A stretch of DNA of 61,499 bases, counting the filler, from Platydemus manokwari (Eukaryota), in assembly GCA_037951405.1 (NCBI GenBank). It is 6 parts of 6 records of this genome, joined end to end, with 100 filler letters (N's around TTAATTAATTAA, not from the genome) between each part and the next. Parts side by side here need not be neighbours in the genome. Positions count along the whole stretch, not along the records: positions 1 to 9,829 come from JBBMOY011199654.1; 5 more parts are not named here. One strand, given 5' to 3'. This document shows positions 1-9,829 of the stretch, piece by piece; within the stretch, counting starts at the first letter, position 1; every line of letters starts with the position of its first letter. Under the pieces are notes generated by a model. That model was not told the origin of the DNA. It saw nothing but the letters and a program-made list of their open reading frames with translations, and did not search any database. The position numbers were made by a program, and so were the translations under genes.

Positions 1-246
1 TTCAGCGTTATAACAATTTGTGTTAATAAAATACCTGCATAAAAACATGAATAACTTTTGACTCAACCTGGTATTTGATGACTTACAAATGCAAACTCAT
101 CCATTCTGCAACTCAGAACACAAAAGTCACCAAACTGATGAGTCAGTATCATGTTGCGTTATAGGGGTTATAAACTCTACCGAACAAATGAGTTCGATTC
201 AAGCTAATCAGATGTAAAATCAAATCAACCCTCTCGATAACAAAAA

Positions 247-1980
247 CAGTCAACCCTGTTCAATATGAACACTAGCGTTCATATTCTTTCAAATGTTCAT
301 ACTGAAAAATAATATGAACAGTTATTAACATAACAATATCAAATATTTCACAAAGAAGTATATATTATACATATTTATCGCAATTTTTATTTCTTTAACA
401 CATACTCAAGTCTGTGATTTTCAATTGTCTCGATTATTTTTCTCCTTGAATTTCTTTAATAAAATACAATATTTTGTTCATCTTATCAGGGATATCAGAT
501 TGAAAGTATTTTTCAAGTTTTCTTGCATATTCAGGCTTCAAATCCTGTTATTACTGTACCTTCTTCCAACTCTTCAACATAACTATCATTTGTTTCTTCA
601 TTTCCATACTTTTCGACTAAATTAAAAAAGAGGTGTTCGTCAAATTTTGGATTAATTTCACATAATGGAAAATCATAACATTCAATATTCACTTCTTTAA
701 CATTCGCATTTTCGATAGACTTGGTAAAACAGTTAGAAATACTCGCAGGTTTAACACAATTCCATGCTTTCGAAATCCAATCTACTGCTTGATATAAATC
801 ACCTTTTTACACTATATCTCCTGTGTAACGTTATTATCTAAATTAAAATACATTGACAGGCTCAAAAGTTTCTTATAATAGAGGTTGAATAATAGATGAA
901 GTATTTGGTGGGAAAAAGAATAATTCGATATTACTGAATTCAAAGTCTTTTTTCCGATTACCTGCTTTCATTGTATTGTTTAAATCTTTTAATCGACCTT
1001 GAGAAATTGCCAACGTCATCCAAGATTTTGTATTCCATGAATAAGAAGTAGTCAATTTACCTATATCAAAGTTTTTAAAACAATGAGATTTCTTCAATCT
1101 ACCTATTACTAAAGGCTTTAATTTTGATCCAAATATATTTGCTCGCATGAGTATAGTAATTCGATCGTTAGAAAACTTACCATTTAACTTATCCTCTTTA
1201 GAAATTGTATATGTTCTGTTTAAAGAGCATTTCCAGAACAGTCCAGTTTCGTCACAATTATAATCTAGATAATCTTTTAACTTTTCCATATACAATTCCT
1301 TAAAATTAAGAACATAATTTTCATTTACGGTTTAGATTGCCCAATATTTATTTTCGATGGTACCAAATATCTGGAAATAAAAGAATTAAGCCAACCATTC
1401 GATGCTTTAAAATCATGACTTTCTAAGTGATTTTCTAGTTCTAATGTTTTTTGTTGCAATATACCACAACTGATACTGATATTTCTTGTTCTCTGGATCT
1501 GAAACCATCCATATAAAATGACATCAACTTGATATTCACAACGCAAATGTGTTTTTCGCTTTTGTTTATTATTCAAGTTTGAATTCTAAACGGAATCTTT
1601 AGATTTCATTAGAATATATAAACAGCCTAATGAGAGATTATATTTTGATGAAAGAAAGCGTTGAGAACAACCTTTATCTTCATCGAATAATTTTAACTAT
1701 TTCTGTTTCTATTCGATACGTAAATCCTTTCTCTTTCGTTTTGAATTTGTGTTTATCATGTTCATAAAAGACAGTTAAAAATTAAATATTGAAACAATAA
1801 TTGCATAACTTATTGATTTATTTTACACTATTTTTTGTTCATTGTTCAAAAACAAACAGTGTTTGTATTACAAAACATAATTTGCAATGAAAACCATATA
1901 ATGTCCAATAATATTGACCTAAATGTTCACATTAAACTGTGTTCATATTAATCAGGGTTCATTTTGAACAGGGTTGACTG
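247..1980 (-). mobile_element. Tigger/pogo (Tc1/mariner superfamily) DNA transposon, both ends present, defective
   Basis: 24-bp terminal inverted repeats: cagtcaaccctgttcaatatgaac (247-270) and gttcattttgaacagggttgactg (1957-1980), 23/24 match. TA follows the right end (1981-1982); the left flank is AA. A broken transposase lies inside. Confidence 0.9.
600..1759 (-). pseudogene. Tigger-type transposase pseudogene (CENP-B-like HTH + DDE_1)
   Basis: Fragments DVILYGWF...FKASNGWLNSF (1325-1576) and YNCDETGLFWK...KSWMT...FFPPNTSSIIQPL (873-1295). Frameshifts and stops are present, and the segments expected to carry the second and third catalytic Asp are missing. The 3' boundary is approximate. 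Confidence 0.85.
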
Positions 1981-3312
1981 TAACTAATAAATAAATGTGA
2001 ATGCAAGGATTTTTATGTAGAAAAATCCCCTATTTAAAGTACAAACAAATGTTAAAATATTTTAATGATTTTACAATATAGAAGATGATTAATGTATTAA
2101 ATTAATTATCGGATCAACACAAAATGATTTTAGCTCCGACGATTTTTTGGTAGGGATAGGCGAATTCGGTATATAAGATAATATGTTAATATATAGATTT
2201 TAGAATATACTCTGAAACACGCAATTCTTTGTAAATTTTATACAAAATACAATATTGTCAAAGTTTTGCAATCGTTTCTTTTCGATTTTCTTGAGCTTGC
2301 TACTTCTATTCCTTTAAAGTCCAATTACAAAAAGCAATTTTTCTTTCCTTTTTAGATTGCGGTTTCAAGATGTTCTTCTTTGAAGTTTTTAATTCAATTT
2401 TTCTTGTTTAGATTTTTATGAGAAAAATTCTAATAATACATATTTCATGGTAAAGGTTAAAGCCAATTACATAAAAATTTAAATCAAATAGTTAAACCAA
2501 TTGTTACTATAAAACATATTCATGGTCGAACTCCTTATCTATGTCCACATGTTTGTGGAGTTCCTGCCATCTTGAGGAACTGGTCGTCGTCTCATCGAGA
2601 ATCGTCAGATCCATTTTTATTTGTTCGGTCTTTCTCTACGGATAACCTCCTTGGGTTTGTTTTCCCGACAAACGATGGCCTTTCAATTCCCTTTATATTA
2701 CAGCTCAATTCGTTGCTGAGTAGTGGTGCTTAGGAAACCTTTCCAACAATTAGTTTACAAAGTAAAATCTCAGTTGCAATTTAGTATTTATAAAAGAAAA
2801 TAATTTAATAGAAATTAATGGCGAACGAGTAAATGATATTATTAACAATGGCTTACGCATTTACACCTAAGGTCAAAATAGAGAACATTCCAGTAAGAAC
2901 GACGTGAACTCCAACTGCTTTAATGTCAACTTTGATCGAAGACGGCATGCGCTTAATCGGAAGACACAATAGCAAAATGTTGGGAATTAGTGTATCAGAC
3001 CAACTATGTGTATCAAAAATATAACTAAAAAGTGTCAATAAATAATCCGCAACAGTCATATAATGTTGGCACAGTATTATAGCAAATAATTATATTATGG
3101 TTTCTATTAGAGTCAAGATACAGTTGCTAATATATATTTCAATTTTAAAGGAAACACCAGAAATAAAAGAGTAAATTGGGATATAATTATATATATCTAG
3201 CCTACATATATGCACCGAAAAGATCAATATCAAACAAAAATATCAATATATTATATACAGATGAATCAAAATCACAGATATGAAAATAATCGATAAGCAA
3301 TATCTACATGTG

Positions 3313-6300
3313 TTAATCATTTGGCATGGACAGCTCCTAAGAAATACGAAAATTAAAATGGTCATTGGCAAATAAAAACCAACCAATAAGCTTTTATTAT
3401 TATCAGTTTTAAGGTGGATTTTATCACCAACTGTTTCGAATCTGAGATCAGTGCGAGGATCCATTCGAGGTAAAGAGACTCGGTTGCTCTTGGTGATGGG
3501 GATTGCTGATAAATTGATCTCATTATCTAAATAATCGATATCAAAATCAATCAATCCATCAATATTCTCACCCATAAATGACATAATGCAATCACTGGTG
3601 CTGTCATCGAACACGATCGATTCGTCGAGGCTTTTCACTTTCATATATCTGCTTATTGGAGTTTGTATCGATTCTTCGGAACGAATCTGAAACAGAATCG
3701 CATCAATGACGTCATCGTGATTAATCAATAATCATTACTCTTCCCTCAAAAACGACGTCAACGTAAAATTCTGATTTTCCTCGCTTGGAATTTGTAGAAG
3801 TGGATGAAGAGCTCGGTTTCAATTTATCAATAGGCCTACGTGGTTTATGTGAGTGCTGCATAAAATAGACAACAATAACAATTTTACAGAATATCGATAA
3901 ATTTGGTGAATAATTATTGACAAAATATATAATCAATACCTTTGATGTGTCATCGATATCTGTTAAATTAACTAAAAATAAACAATTAATGAATCAATAT
4001 ATAAATAAAATGAATATTTATTGATCTGTTACTTCTTAACTCCAAGTTATCCTTGAGACTGTTTTGATTGGCTAAAATTAAAATATAACAATTGATTTGG
4101 AATGACAATTTAATGGAGTAACCTTGACAACTTATCGGATGTTTTGAGAATCTTAATTCATTGGTTGGAATATTCTGAATAAACGGAGAAAAAAATCAAA
4201 AATTAAATCAATAAAAAATAACTTCTTTTGTTTCTGGTTCCTTGTTTGTCACTGAAGATCTCTTCGATTTCTTTGATGTTGCTGGTGATTGGCGAGTGGT
4301 TTTACTATTGCTTGGCGATTCAATGTGATTGTTTGATTGCGATATCGCCATGTTTGAGGCTATGCTTGATTGGCGGTGGGTTTTACGATTGTTTGATTGC
4401 GATATTGTTCTTTTATTTGATGTTATTTTTGACTGGCTGCGGGTTTTACAAGTGTTTGGCGATTCAATGTGATTGTTCGATTGCGACTTGGTTATATTTG
4501 GTGCTATCGGTGATTGCTGAAGATTTTTACAAATATTTGATGAACCGATGTCACTGTTTGACACATGCGCTTTAGTTTTTGTTGTTATCCTTGATTGGTG
4601 ATGAGTTTTACAAATATTTGATGAGTTTATGTGATCGTTTGATGTGGATATTGGCGATTGATCAAATTTTTCATTGTTCATTGATATTTCCAATGAACGT
4701 TCGTTTATCGATTCATTATTATCGAGAATGACATTATTACCGACTGATTTATTTTTACATGGCTTTTCCAATTTTTTCTCAAAACTTTTATTTAATTCCT
4801 TTTTTCCAATCGATAAACTGTGATTAGTGATCAGTTTCAAAGGACTTGTTTTAGATGACACATGTGGATCACTAATATAATCTAGATCAACACCGTCATC
4901 CTCATTTGAATCAATTTTTCTTCTTTTAGTTTCATCAATATTTTCCTTATCATCGCTGTCAGTTAAATCGATAATCAGATTATCAAAAGATTTTCGTTTC
5001 GAAACAGAGACCTTTTCTGATTGGTAATTTTGCTTCAACTTGCTTTCCAATGATTTTTCTCGAGATGTTCCAAAAGATTTTAAGGAAATTTTTAACGGTT
5101 TTTTGAAAACAGAGTTTTCTTGCGACTCAGAAAAAATATCCGAGATCGGTTCGAAAGACGGGCTACGAATATTTGATTTAAAAATTGACGAGTCATCGAA
5201 ATTGTAAATTGAAGTTGTCATGGTGGCATACCTAAATGGGTGTTATCGATATCAAAACGGAGAAATACGCGTTAAAATCATATGAGATATTGTCATATCA
5301 TTAGTCATGACCTGTTAATTTTAAAGAATTCAATAAATCGATTAAATCACACTCAAAATAAAGAAACTGAGAAAATGATTCTATTCCAACTCCACATACA
5401 ATATCATATGTGTCTTGAGATAAAAAAAAAATAACAAACACCCATTATAAACAACGGACATGTCATAATAATTAATTATAAATCAATAAATTAAAATATT
5501 TTCGTCGATATAATGTGCTGAGTGGAGATGAAAAATATTTTGCAGACCAATTTGATAAAAATATCAATTATTGTGACGAATAAATCAAGAGTAAAAACCA
5601 AATTCTCTCACAAACTCGTTCTCAAAACTGAAATTCACGCACAACTTTAATTCTTTATTTTGTCAAAATGCGCTACTTACAATTGCAAGTAGATAATACA
5701 TTGTGATAATGATATATTTGCAAATATAAATTATAATTGTACACAATATGAAACCACAGATAAATATCAATCAATATTAACCTCAATTTTGGACATTTGC
5801 AGATGACATGCATTATTGAAATGAGGTTCCTCCAATCATCTGGGATTTGATTCACGAAATAATATTGGAACAAGTCTAAATAGGCCGCATTCTCGGTATT
5901 TGGGTAACAGTTGGCAATACCGAATTTATACATTGGACCGAGCAGTTTGAAGCATTGTTTATTGGCAATGACCGATCTACCACCGTTACCCACCCATTCG
6001 ATCTCAGTGGGTTTCATTATGCTAATAGTGCAATGCGGTTGCTTCACTTTGAATCCTTTGATGAAAAATCGATCAGTGTTATCCTTTTTCATGATCGACC
6101 ATAAAATGATCAGAGAATCATCTTTGTTAAAAGTGGAATTCAGTTTTTTCCCTTTGGCGAACTGTTCATAGGAAATGGATTGGGAATCGTCGAGACTGCT
6201 TTGTCTGGCGAAAATCAATACAATTAGATTATAAAGGATAGCAGAATATTATGACGGATGGAATAATTACTTAATTGGAGTATGGGAAGTGCCAGTCATA

Positions 6301-8449
6301 GATTCGTTGATGGTCTAAACTGATTGTCATGGAAACAATATACAATGGTGATTATCATACTTGAAGAACGTCGAGTTTTTGACCACATTTTTTGAGAAAT
6401 TTTTTCAATGATTTCATCCAATCGCGCTCATTCTGAATGAAGCCGTTGAAAAATAATTCAAAAATCACCAATCAATATTCTTACTCGGCAATCTTTCAAT
6501 ATGTTGTCAATATCAATGGAAATATTATTAAAATCGTCATCAATATCTACTTTGGGTTTGTCGTGAAACAATGTCTTTGGAGCCCGATTTTTAACCAATG
6601 TTTCTAATTGACTCCGAGTGATATTTTCAATTGGCAATCTGAATAATTAATTCTTATTGGCTCTATTAACGATAATGTTTGTTTAAAAATTAAACATTTC
6701 AACAATTTTCTTAAATCAATCAATAGAATTTAATCAAATTTCTAAAAATTATTTGAATCATTCCAGTAACTTAGCAACAAGCCTTCGTATTTCATAATGA
6801 TTTTTTCAACAAATTAAATTTCACAATTTATTGAGAAATTTATAATTTTGAAAAATTATCAAAGACAACCAATCAAATGATTTGTTTCACTCATAGAAAT
6901 TTATCAATTTTCAAAAATGTACCTTTCGATTGATAGAAAACTTTTGTCGATTTTCGAAGATAAATTGACAATGTTGCGCAACCAGTTGTCTTGTGATAAT
7001 AATACAACCGATTCGTTGAATAATGGTGAAGATGGATGGAAATGTTTCTTAATACATTTAGTATCGGCATTTCCCACCAGTTTGTATTGACAATCAAGAG
7101 TAGAAACAGTTTTGTTGAGATCGTCATATTGCAATATTGCACCAGTAATGCGGGTTTTTAATTTGGAATTTTTGTGGATTTTCATTTCACCAATAATTCT
7201 GCACACACCATCATAGAATATTGGAAACCATGATCTAATTTCCAGATTCATGGCAGGATCTATCGATAAATCAGTGGTAAAATTTATTTATTAGCCCATA
7301 TAAGTACATGCCAGCTCAATATCAAAATAGAGGTGATAAATTATCATTCGAATGGATAAATATTTCATTTAAATATATATCTTCATGAATGTTTTTAAAA
7401 AGTGATTCTGTTATATATTGCTATGATATCAGATCAAATAATGACAATCCAGTATTGTGTAATCATTGTACAGATATTTCGAAATCACTGTCAAGTTATA
7501 AAATGTAAATTGATTTTGTTACAGCTTGGTCATATCATGAGGCTGTTGAAGCTATGTTTCAGTTTGATATGTTTTGTCGATTACAACATTAAATTTTCAT
7601 TCCAAACCATTAATAATTTGTCAATTATTTATTAATAATTAATAAATATTATTTACGAAAAGGATATTAATATTACAAATTTTATAAATATATCTCGATA
7701 ATTGTTTATAAAATCTAACCAGAAACAACAAAATCTTCAAAATCCTCGGATTGATTGCCTTCGTCTTTGTGAGATTCCATAATTTCAGACTCCACTGATT
7801 CTTCTGAACAATCTACAAAGGTTTGTGTTTCTCATTAAAATTAATCACTAGTTTATATTTTATAAATTCATCTTTATATCTTACAGCTTTAAGAATATTT
7901 ACATAATGTTACAAATTACTAAAAAAATTCTTTATAAAAATTATTATTATAAATAAAATTTATCAAGTTAATGTTTTTATTAATGAAGTATATACAATGA
8001 CATTTAACTGACTATTTTATGTTGAGACCAAATATTTAAAAATACTAACCTTCATCTATTGGATAAGGTCGTGTGGAGAAGCTAAGTAAATCATTAAAGT
8101 GTTTTATGCGTGGTTTATCCTGCAGACAGGTACTTAAACTATCAAATTCGAATTTATAATCCATGATATTTAACGGAAATTTAGCATCTTGTTCAGCTAA
8201 ATTATAGTAAGATAAAAAATTCTAATTATGATATCAAACCTGATATCGGATAATTTAGCTCTATTTCCAATTTACGCCTTTCAAGATCTAAAAATAATTT
8301 TGGAATTGAATATATCCATTTATTTTATTTACTTCTTTTAGCCAGTCTTTGATTACGATCCTTTATCTATAATTTGAATTTCAAGTCAATAAAAAATAAC
8401 TGAATAATATTACCGCTCTCTCAATAATTTTTGCATATTCATAGTCCAT
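3313..8449 (-). CDS. ~987-aa protein with two tandem SANTA-like domains and an S/N/K-rich repeat region; candidate KNL2/M18BP1-related protein
   Basis: 17 GT-AG exons in compatible phase: 8449-8414, 8366-8333, 8287-8240, 8196-8050, 7812-7720, 7259-6923, 6638-6485, 6432-6361, 6314-6271, 6204-5782, 5231-4223, 4174-4123, 4071-4033, 3971-3940, 3855-3739, 3686-3384, 3336-3313 (2964 nt). SANTA-like patterns: IRSW..IIG..TGAI..YKLVG..DNWLRNI and IILW..IKG..FKLLGPM..YPN..FVNQIPDDWRNLI. The last exon is uncertain. Confidence 0.7.
4270..4665 (-). repeat. Degenerate coding tandem repeat (~20-25-aa unit QSPI...SQSNNHIESPN.CKT)
   Basis: About 6 imperfect units, visible in the protein and in DNA (e.g. ggcgattcaatgtgattgtt recurs near 4314 and 4458). 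Confidence 0.75.
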
Positions 8450-8689
8450 TCAAAAAGTGGTTTTAACAGCAATGAAATATTGAAATATTTAAACAATTGT
8501 ATGCTCAATAAAGAAATAAATCATAAAAGTTATTCCAAACATGACAATTATTACATTTTATTTTAATTAATTTTATACTTGTACAACATGATATTGAAAA
8601 TATGTCAAAATAATTATAATTAACAGGACTTCATAATAAATTATTTATAAAAATTAATTTTTTTTAATAAAGATATAAAATTGATTAAT

Positions 8690-9780
8690 CCTTTGATACG
8701 TCCGGTAAGTTTGCTTGTTTGTAATTCTTAGAGAATTGCTCCATTGTCTAGTAGATAGAGTTACTATTGCTATTTTGTTGAATGCTCTTGACGAGGATGG
8801 TAGCTTGAGGTTTAGATTAGAGGCATCCTTTAGAAGTGTGCTGATTAAATAGCGGCTTAGTAAGTCCGATGTTGGCTTGGACTTTGTTGTTAATTGTATT
8901 CAAAGAACCGAAAACTCCTCTACAAAGAACGTCTAGAGAGGTTTCGAATCGGGACTTCGTTTTGATTTCATTGGCAATATGTCGGTATTTTTCATAATAA
9001 AGGAGACTGTGTTTATCGAAGTTCTTCATGATGTCGAATGGTACTATGAGATCAACAATGTAGGCATGTCTCTTCGCTTTATTTCTTATTATAAGGTTTG
9101 GTCGCAATTTTGTGTTGGTTTCCAGAGGGCTCGTGTCGATATCTGTAGTGATGTCATCAGACATAGCCAACCTAGTTTTGTTGGAGCGTACATGAATTGA
9201 TTGTTGCTTAAGTTTGAACCGTCCATCTTTAGTATTTTTCGGGAGGTGTGTCTGATTTTCTTGTCAAAGCTTTGGATTCGCTCGTTGTTTTTGGTTGTGA
9301 CTAGAACGCGAGAATCGAGTTTGATGGTGTCGACTTCTTGGATGTAGAGATGATAGGGCAATTTTGGGTGTAAGAAAATAGTATAATGCCTGAATTTCTG
9401 CTATGGGTGTAGTTGAAAGTCTGTAATTGCTTGATAGTCAGTAATGATGGAGCCTAGTATGATGTAGATTGGTGTTCTTTTTTGGTGTCCACAAGGGACA
9501 CCTAGATATCTGTAGAGTTTCTCGTTGTCTATAATTGGAACTGGTTCCTCGTTAATGGTAAGTTCTATTCTATTTCTGACGTTCTTGCTGTAGTAGCCAC
9601 ATTTGGAAGTATTGATTGTGAGTTGGATATCATTCGTTCCGTGGATTATGTGGTTCAGTCTGTGTTCGATATTTTCGCTGGAGTAGGCCAGGATGACAAT
9701 GACATCTTTGTAAGCAATATTGAGAAGTTTTAGTCGTGGATTGATAGCGATTTAAGTATACTGGTCGACAAGATGTTTAA
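8690..9780 (-). mobile_element. Degraded RLE-type non-LTR retrotransposon (NeSL/Utopia/HERO-like), 3' part
   Basis: RT motif IAYKDVIVILA (decayed YADD), INTSKC and YRYLGV; thumb LHP*QK...FLHPKL...FMYAPTKLG; then restriction-like endonuclease LRPNL...IVDLIVPFD...EKYRHIA...GVFGS. It runs up to the end of piece A. Confidence 0.85.
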
Positions 9781-9829
9781 CCCGGTCTTAATTAGTATAC
9801 ATTAAGGCGTTTTCCCAATTATTATTGTT

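Follow-up and report, generated by a model that had tools for sequence, protein, structure and literature searches.

Does a single gene of Platydemus manokwari encode two SANTA domains, the domain of the KNL2/M18BP1 family, and could such a protein still serve the centromere? The question is raised by a locus in a 61,499-nucleotide stretch of the P. manokwari assembly (GCA_037951405.1), hereafter the window, which joins six parts of that assembly; the gene lies in the first of them (positions 1 to 9,829, from JBBMOY011199654.1). An initial annotation, made from the sequence alone, had proposed that two exons of one spliced frame each encode a SANTA-like domain, here called A and B. The window DNA is eukaryotic and AT-rich (~30% G+C), and the source assembly (911 Mb in 1.99 million contigs) is heavily fragmented. 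The evidence supports well the presence in one gene of two homologous, SANTA-derived domains that arose by an old internal duplication. We consider it reasonably probable that the window gene is a fast-evolving and very divergent member of the SANTA (KNL2/M18BP1) family, with two SANTA-fold domains in tandem. In the layout that we propose, domain A (exon 1) and domain B (exon 5) would come first, then a long disordered region rich in Ser and Lys, and at the C-terminus a short, conserved motif with an arginine anchor. All similarity searches and fold predictions of the window gene used single exons, one by one.

Relationship of domains A and B to the SANTA family

Both stretches named in the initial annotation are minus-strand open reading frames, and the landmarks it listed (W, G, I, [YF]xLxG, W) are present in each. 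These landmarks equal the five invariant columns in a joint alignment of 14 family domains, namely an early Trp, a Gly, an Ile, the Gly of [YF]xLxG and a late Trp (W8, G21, I39, G60 and W90 in window domain A). A published SANTA motif is also recognizable at the N-terminal end of the domains. Zhang et al. (2006, as quoted in PMC9210943) describe a hydrophobic motif of the VxLxDW type there; in all 14 domains the invariant early Trp follows alternating hydrophobic residues (LEIRSW in window A, LIILW in window B). The picture is less clear for the C-terminal FxxGFPxxW motif: across the 14 domains its Trp never varies and its Phe hardly does. Window B reads F-V-N-Q-I-P-D-D-W there, with the Pro kept and the Gly-Phe lost; in window A, which has an insertion, just the Phe and D-N-W remain.

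The homology chain from the window gene to SANTA runs through a paralogue. A scan of the whole assembly with the Pfam SANTA profile (PF09133) gave full-length matches of 24 bits on two other contigs, L001 and L003 (C1163102 and C1282907). An exon whose start shares the W-F-P...I-I-G signature of window exon 1 lies ~600 bases upstream of their SANTA exons, which indicates that the genome contains a second gene with the A-linker-B layout. The domains B of this paralogue type, from L001, L003 and the protein P0006, gave scores of 24.5, 24.2 and 24.5 bits over profile positions 5-91 of 92, the Pfam gathering score being 21 bits; a further protein, P0004, reached 17.5 bits. Window-type B aligned with paralogue-type B by hhalign at 96% (E 2e-9, 96 columns), and window A with the A-type profile at 95.5% (E 1.5e-8, 60 columns). 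Further, tblastn of P0006 against the window aligned the whole of exon 1 (7254-6925, E 4.6e-6), and domain A sits at the extreme N-terminus of the window protein, as it does in P0006 and L003.

The family is narrow. Searching 1.84 billion protein representatives with a B-domain profile yielded only six true relatives: three orthologues of the window gene (P0001, P0002 and P0007, with 39-51% identity to window domain B) and three proteins of the paralogue type (P0003, P0004 and P0006). P0006 is a deposited 276-amino-acid protein that carries A, linker and B in one chain, and a soil-metagenome contig (L013) has the same three exons in order, so the A-linker-B order and strand are kept in the window, L001, L003 and L013. 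Because P0001 and P0003 come from one sequencing run, another species also has both gene types. The paralogue and the relatives P0003, P0004 and P0006 share the layout of the window gene, and their domains are homologous to it class by class (95-96% by hhalign). The paralogue differs from the window gene in its ~20-30% identity, in a B domain that passes the Pfam SANTA profile, and in its linker. A profile scan of the genome gave no further copies, and word-index protein searches with each exon and with P0007 gave nothing beyond P0007 itself. Sequence searches of the PDB with three domain profiles and the C-terminal exon returned chance rows only and did not reach the SANTA crystal structure 9R6H, and metagenome scans returned only the known L013 and one bacterial chance match, L017.

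Language-model features gave a link to SANTA through an orthologue. The ten best family-bearing matches of P0007 belong to one family or clan, and its top three feature neighbors are SANTA clusters: first a PF09133-bearing flatworm cluster (0.85, 190/256 features) and then plant SANTA proteins. The same approach applied to window exon B was uninformative, with a best score of 0.77 and viral clusters as look-alikes.

Window exons A and B have no BLASTP similarity to each other, yet the profiles of the two classes do. All A-type against all B-type domains aligned collinearly over 78 columns at 89.8% by hhalign (E 1.8e-6); only two of 200 column shuffles reached the score, and the reversed profile scored 8.5 compared to 40. 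The maximum-likelihood domain tree unites every A domain in a single group (99/98) and divides the B domains into two sister groups, a window type and a paralogue type (90/92 and 92/92). The A domains thus group apart from the B domains across both gene types, as expected if the tandem duplication predates the gene duplication, and the old internal duplication suggested by the initial annotation is borne out. We propose that a tandem duplication would first have produced A and B, and that duplication of the whole gene would then have given the window gene and the paralogue L001/L003. Between the two paralogue copies, L001 and L003, dN/dS is 0.12 in domain A and 0.27 in domain B.

The predicted fold of domain A also pointed to SANTA. 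An AF2 model of window exon 1, built from a 14-row joint alignment (pLDDT 77, pTM 0.66), has a beta-domain of six strands and, after it, three helices, of which the last is the longest. This topology agrees with the published description of the SANTA crystal of human M18BP1, 9R6H, a small beta-domain with three helices of which the third is longest (PMC12953894). Foldseek against 350,542 PDB chains ranked the two 9R6H chains first and second (E 9e-3 and 3e-2, probability 1.00 and 0.99, TM 0.53 and 0.49). An exhaustive VIA-align search of 48,161 PDB representatives gave 9r6h_B a Z of 6.9 (89 residues, rmsd 4.5), in a match that extends across the full domain and its helices; no other chain reached Z>=5. 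The DNMT1 RFTS domain came next at 4.8, and by rank 50 the value had dropped to 2.5. A shape search of the ESM Atlas with the same model retrieved a flatworm cluster (TM 0.57), 27% of whose members carry PF09133, beside small bacterial domains.

Behind 9R6H, the domain A model matched the RFTS beta-barrel of DNMT1, DIM2 and MET1 (Z 4-5.4) and small bacterial proteins, including DUF6634 (TM 0.58-0.66). The DNMT1 RFTS barrel (Z 4.8-5.4) and the bacterial DUF6634-like clusters (TM 0.62-0.66) superpose on the beta-part of the model; the likeness is one of fold, unsupported by sequence, and the three-helix tail lies outside the RFTS match. Bacterial and phage proteins of this small-domain kind have also been mentioned for SANTA (PMC12953894), and these matches may reflect a deeper fold relationship of the domain.

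Several results weigh against the reading of A and B as two SANTA domains. The initial annotation expected two separate Pfam SANTA hits, and there were none: neither window exon matched PF09133 even at E<=10, nor did A-type domains from any source. The B-type profile recovered no canonical M18BP1 among the 1.84 billion representatives. Window A, which diverges most among the four domain classes (window-type and paralogue-type A and B), has a very long branch in the tree (2.45 changes per site) and aligned weakly with the B profiles when used alone (7%, E 0.005). The VIA-align Z of 6.9 is middling by the tool's own note. The AF2 alignment mixed A-type and B-type rows, with B-type dominant, so the model of A is not independent of the B family and may speak for the whole family more than for A alone. 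For B itself, the AF2 fold from a shallow four-row alignment had a pLDDT of 43 and was unusable, and we kept it out of the fold search. In the structural comparison proposed for each half, domain A gave 9R6H as its best match and domain B gave no usable model, and the claim of two SANTA-like domains stands on the homology chain through the paralogue and on the fold match of A, not on a direct Pfam match.

The same results bear on an alternative that we regard as improbable, in which only B derives from SANTA and exon 1 is an unrelated small beta-rich domain that carries W...G...YxLxG...W by chance or convergence. The lack of Pfam matches among A-type domains, the weak alignment of window A with the B profiles, the mostly B-type rows behind the AF2 model, and an hhalign value of only 43% for A-type against paralogue-type B would all fit that alternative. 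They are countered by the alignment of A-type with window-type B (79%) and by that of all A with all B domains, whose score the shuffled controls rarely reached. The five columns are invariant in 14 of 14 domains, and the A model matches the SANTA crystal across the whole domain, helices included. In addition, when P0006 was aligned with all the fragments by MAFFT, the B fragments landed unprompted on domain A of P0006, a misplacement that makes this alignment illustrative only. We retain the reading of two SANTA-derived domains.

Exon structure of the window gene

That the window holds a real, intact, spliced multi-exon gene is well supported as far as the DNA sequence can tell. Our hand-built model runs on the minus strand from 7251 to 3313 and keeps the reading frame throughout its 11 exons and 852 amino acids; the 17 exons and 987 amino acids of the initial annotation were not confirmed. 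The exons are as follows.

6923-7251, minus strand: exon 1, with ATG at 7251, SANTA-like domain A and donor AG|GTACAT
6485-6638, minus strand: exon 2, tentative linker; acceptor and donor suit the phase of exon 1 (2 nt + 1 nt)
6361-6432, minus strand: exon 3, tentative linker; phase 0 at both ends; aligned weakly, in collinear order, with P0007 residues 36-56 by tblastn (E 1.9)
6271-6314, minus strand: exon 4, tentative micro-exon from splice-path enumeration; gives the 2 nt required by the acceptor of exon 5
5782-6204, minus strand: exon 5, SANTA-like domain B, from orthologue matches; donor AG|GTTAAT
4223-5231, minus strand: exon 6, long Ser/Asn/Lys-rich middle region, probably disordered; in frame with exon 5 via AG|G
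4123-4174, minus strand: exon 7, tentative, from splice sites and phase
3940-3971, minus strand: exon 8, tentative, from splice sites and phase
3739-3855, minus strand: exon 9, tentative, basic and Ser-rich, from splice sites and phase; no Pfam match
3384-3686, minus strand: exon 10, with the conserved C-terminal motif at 3393-3503, from tblastn of P0007 residues 431-467
3313-3336, minus strand: exon 11, tentative, from an acceptor and a short frame; stop codon TAA

The open frames of the two SANTA-like exons held up, and their limits were revised from 7245-6970 and 6113-5820 to 7251-6923 and 6204-5782. The donor that the initial annotation had placed at 6970 was rejected, as its frame runs into a stop beyond the acceptor at 6638. 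Exon 2 has a weak, by-eye likeness to the N-terminus of P0007, and the length of exon 4 equals 13 extra residues of P0007 at the same place. The Pfam scan of exon 6 found no domain. Domain B and the Ser-rich region run on unbroken in the orthologue P0001 (contig L012), which ties exon 5 to exon 6. At the other end of the gene, P0007 likewise terminates ~15 residues past the C-terminal motif.

The tentative standing of linker exons 2-4 leaves room for the alternative that exon 1 and exon 5 are parts of separate transcripts or genes, so that the window protein would have a single SANTA-like domain. The orthologues P0001, P0002 and P0007 also stop short of domain A, their contigs or models being cut off. 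Joint transcription of exons A and B in the window gene is something that we infer, and this too counts against two domains in one protein. We nevertheless judge separate transcripts very unlikely. The order and strand of A and B are kept in three further loci, and both domains occur in one deposited protein. Exon 1 can also be joined to exon 5 by two in-frame splice paths, through the small exons 2-4 or directly, according to phase arithmetic and splice-path enumeration. Further, exon 1 carries a start codon and places domain A at the N-terminus, in agreement with P0006 and L003.

Exon 5 and the start of exon 6 have a second copy on contig C983195 (L010, 1-2742), with 96-97% protein identity. 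Between window exon 5 and this copy 1.2% of the bases differ, compared to 4.8% in the adjacent intron. This contrast, the low dN/dS of the paralogue pair and the existence of orthologues in other samples all favor a real gene. Upstream in L010, at the site expected for the linker exons, is an opposite-strand frame with a zinc-knuckle CCHC pattern typical of retroelement gag. L010 may be an allele that carries an insertion, or else a partial duplicate of recent origin.

In P0001 (L012, 413-1909), a block of ~125 residues in the disordered region after domain B occurs twice, almost in register. Window exon 6 has shorter, repeated Ser/Asn/Lys-rich phrases where P0001 has this block.

Other SANTA genes and the question of centromere function

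The genome also contains canonical SANTA pieces. Locus L002 (65-313, minus strand) scored 24.9 bits at profile positions 34-72 and carries a Trp-His pair in F-W-H-S-T-A-I, and L004 (106-267, plus strand) scored 24.6 bits at positions 68-92 and carries G-F-P-E-N-W. The matches span only 25-39 residues each, and the G+C content of the two contigs (33-35%) fits the genome. A weaker SANTA piece with F-P-E-N-W lies in L005 (968-1189, minus strand). The three are probably exons of a conventional M18BP1/KNL2 gene. If L002 and L004 are parts of one intact gene, the genome would have a conventional SANTA gene besides the two double-SANTA genes. The Pfam SANTA scan also flagged L006 (contig C732745), which we rejected as a low-complexity false positive, a short repeat array of K-N-W-K-E-I-R-F-E-T-R units. 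KNL2/M18BP1 proteins bind Mis18 alpha/beta or CENP-C and are required to load CENP-A. Four Yippee-Mis18 family matches were found in the genome scan, and Mis18 and Yippee are not separable this way.

These findings change how the function of the window gene is to be seen. The initial annotation proposed a rewired centromere-licensing factor, a conjecture that the canonical SANTA pieces and the second double-SANTA gene weaken. The window gene would be one of at least three SANTA genes and not necessarily the licensing factor. In human M18BP1, an exposed Trp-His pair (W413/H414) is required for recruitment to the centromere (PMC12953894). In the region before the conserved S/P-x-I of the 14-domain alignment, none of the four classes has a Trp-His pair, as judged by reading without a direct alignment to the human protein. 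Because the double-SANTA domains appear to lack the pair and a canonical piece has it, centromere licensing may be done by the other, canonical SANTA gene.

The remaining hallmarks of the family give a mixed picture. As the initial annotation had stated, there is no SANT domain: Pfam scans of both SANTA-like exons and of every other exon-sized frame, taken singly, found no SANT/Myb, SANTA or CENP-C family. The SANT/Myb domain is a feature of animal KNL2/M18BP1 proteins and is absent in the plant members. The annotation had likewise seen no CENP-C motif, and here the conclusion needs qualification. The C-terminal motif at 3393-3503 was located by tblastn of the P0007 segment onto 3503-3393 (E 1e-4), and its first half lines up with the CENPC-k motif, printed as K-R-S-R-S-G-R-V/L-L-V-S-P-L-E-F-W (PMC9210943), with an RSGR-type arginine anchor and the spacing kept. 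In chicken KNL2, the arginine anchor is R527, and F535 and W536 at +8/+9 read the CENP-A tail (PMC10015371). The window motif has S-N-R followed by Pro-Arg at +8/+9, and P0007 has R-S-G-R followed by P-L-D-P-R. A true CENP-C-like motif was therefore rejected for want of the Phe-Trp pair, its defining feature; at most, the window motif may anchor to the acidic patch and would then resemble the shortened motif of grass delta-KNL2.

Taken together with the narrow distribution of the family, these features raise the alternative that the function has left centromere licensing. The L002/L004 gene would then be the KNL2/M18BP1 orthologue, and the double-SANTA genes would be lineage-specific paralogues that use SANTA as a peptide-binding module in some other chromatin or nuclear task. 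The canonical pieces (~25 bits each over their short spans, with Trp-His in L002) point this way, as do the double-SANTA domains without that pair on our reading of the alignment, the lack of a SANT domain and of a complete CENP-C-like motif, and a family that is fast-evolving and very narrow. The L002 and L004 contigs, however, measure just 313 and 553 bases, and neither one intact gene nor origin from the same organism can be demonstrated from them. Further, the nearest feature neighbors of P0007 are SANTA/KNL2 clusters, and both plant KNL2 paralogues stay in CENH3 loading even though beta-KNL2 is SANTA-only (PMC13294675). We hold this alternative to be unlikely, though less so than the others considered here.

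The closest known systems are vertebrate and plant KNL2 proteins. Like vertebrate KNL2/M18BP1, it has a SANTA fold in its N-terminal part followed by long disordered Ser/Lys-rich regions, and its domain A model matches 9R6H best. It differs in having two SANTA-fold domains instead of one, in the failure of its domains to match Pfam SANTA, in the absence of a detected SANT/Myb domain, in the apparent absence of Trp-His from the alignment, and in an arginine anchor without Phe-Trp. Plant beta-KNL2 and delta-KNL2 are also SANTA family members without SANT and a complete CENPC-k, and they too exist alongside another SANTA paralogue. In grasses, delta-KNL2 retains just a truncated CENPC-k, its first half (RRLRSGKV/I), a parallel to the half-motif of the window gene. 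The nearest parallel to a pair of SANTA units is in trans, as alpha-KNL2 and beta-KNL2 are predicted to pair via their SANTA domains (PMC13294675); each plant chain has one SANTA domain, whereas the window gene has two in cis. Language-model features of P0007 were the only source of sequence similarity to plant KNL2. In the full-text literature we found no description of tandem, double or two SANTA domains, which is not proof of absence and does not cover InterPro architectures.

If the window gene is a divergent KNL2/M18BP1 family member, as we favor, its protein would dock on centromeric chromatin or kinetochore proteins like other SANTA proteins, and two SANTA modules in cis would provide a built-in valency of two. 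In humans, two M18BP1 copies held on the Mis18 alpha/beta scaffold supply that valency. The idea builds on reports that M18BP1, once dimerized, can do without Mis18 alpha/beta in human cells (PMC12953894) and that M18BP1 dimerizes on the Mis18 hexamer (PMC5245964). The C-terminal motif may engage the acidic patch of the nucleosome, but it lacks the Phe-Trp pair by which the CENP-A tail is read. A stronger version of this proposal, which we advance by analogy and consider doubtful, is a lineage-restricted, possibly flatworm, KNL2/M18BP1 variant in which the cis pair of SANTA domains provides the valency of two that in other animals comes from M18BP1 dimers on Mis18 alpha/beta, and is combined with an acidic-patch arginine anchor that does not read the CENP-A tail. 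If true, such a variant would represent a differently wired form of centromere marking.

Of all parts of human M18BP1, only SANTA has proved indispensable for recruitment to the centromere; its ligand has yet to be identified, and the valency of M18BP1 matters (PMC12953894). A protein that naturally carries two SANTA domains in cis would offer a ready-made test of the valency idea and a new handle on the SANTA ligand. Should the gene instead have left the centromere pathway, it would represent a reuse of the SANTA fold elsewhere, which likewise has not been described before. The Pfam profile also misses a whole branch of SANTA domains, and surveys of M18BP1 presence and absence across animals may under-call the family.

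Neighboring sequences in the window

Downstream of the gene, a remnant of a Tc5/pogo-type DNA transposase occupies positions 876-1576 on the minus strand. The element has probably decayed, since its DDE_1 (E 7e-14) and HTH_Tnp_Tc5 (E 2e-12) matches are split between two frames, the second in the next frame from the first. Upstream of the gene, at 8817-9361 on the minus strand, are two overlapping open frames of 117 and 90 amino acids that had no Pfam match and were not counted in the gene. By eye, the 117-amino-acid frame resembles the C-terminal part of retroelement polyproteins.

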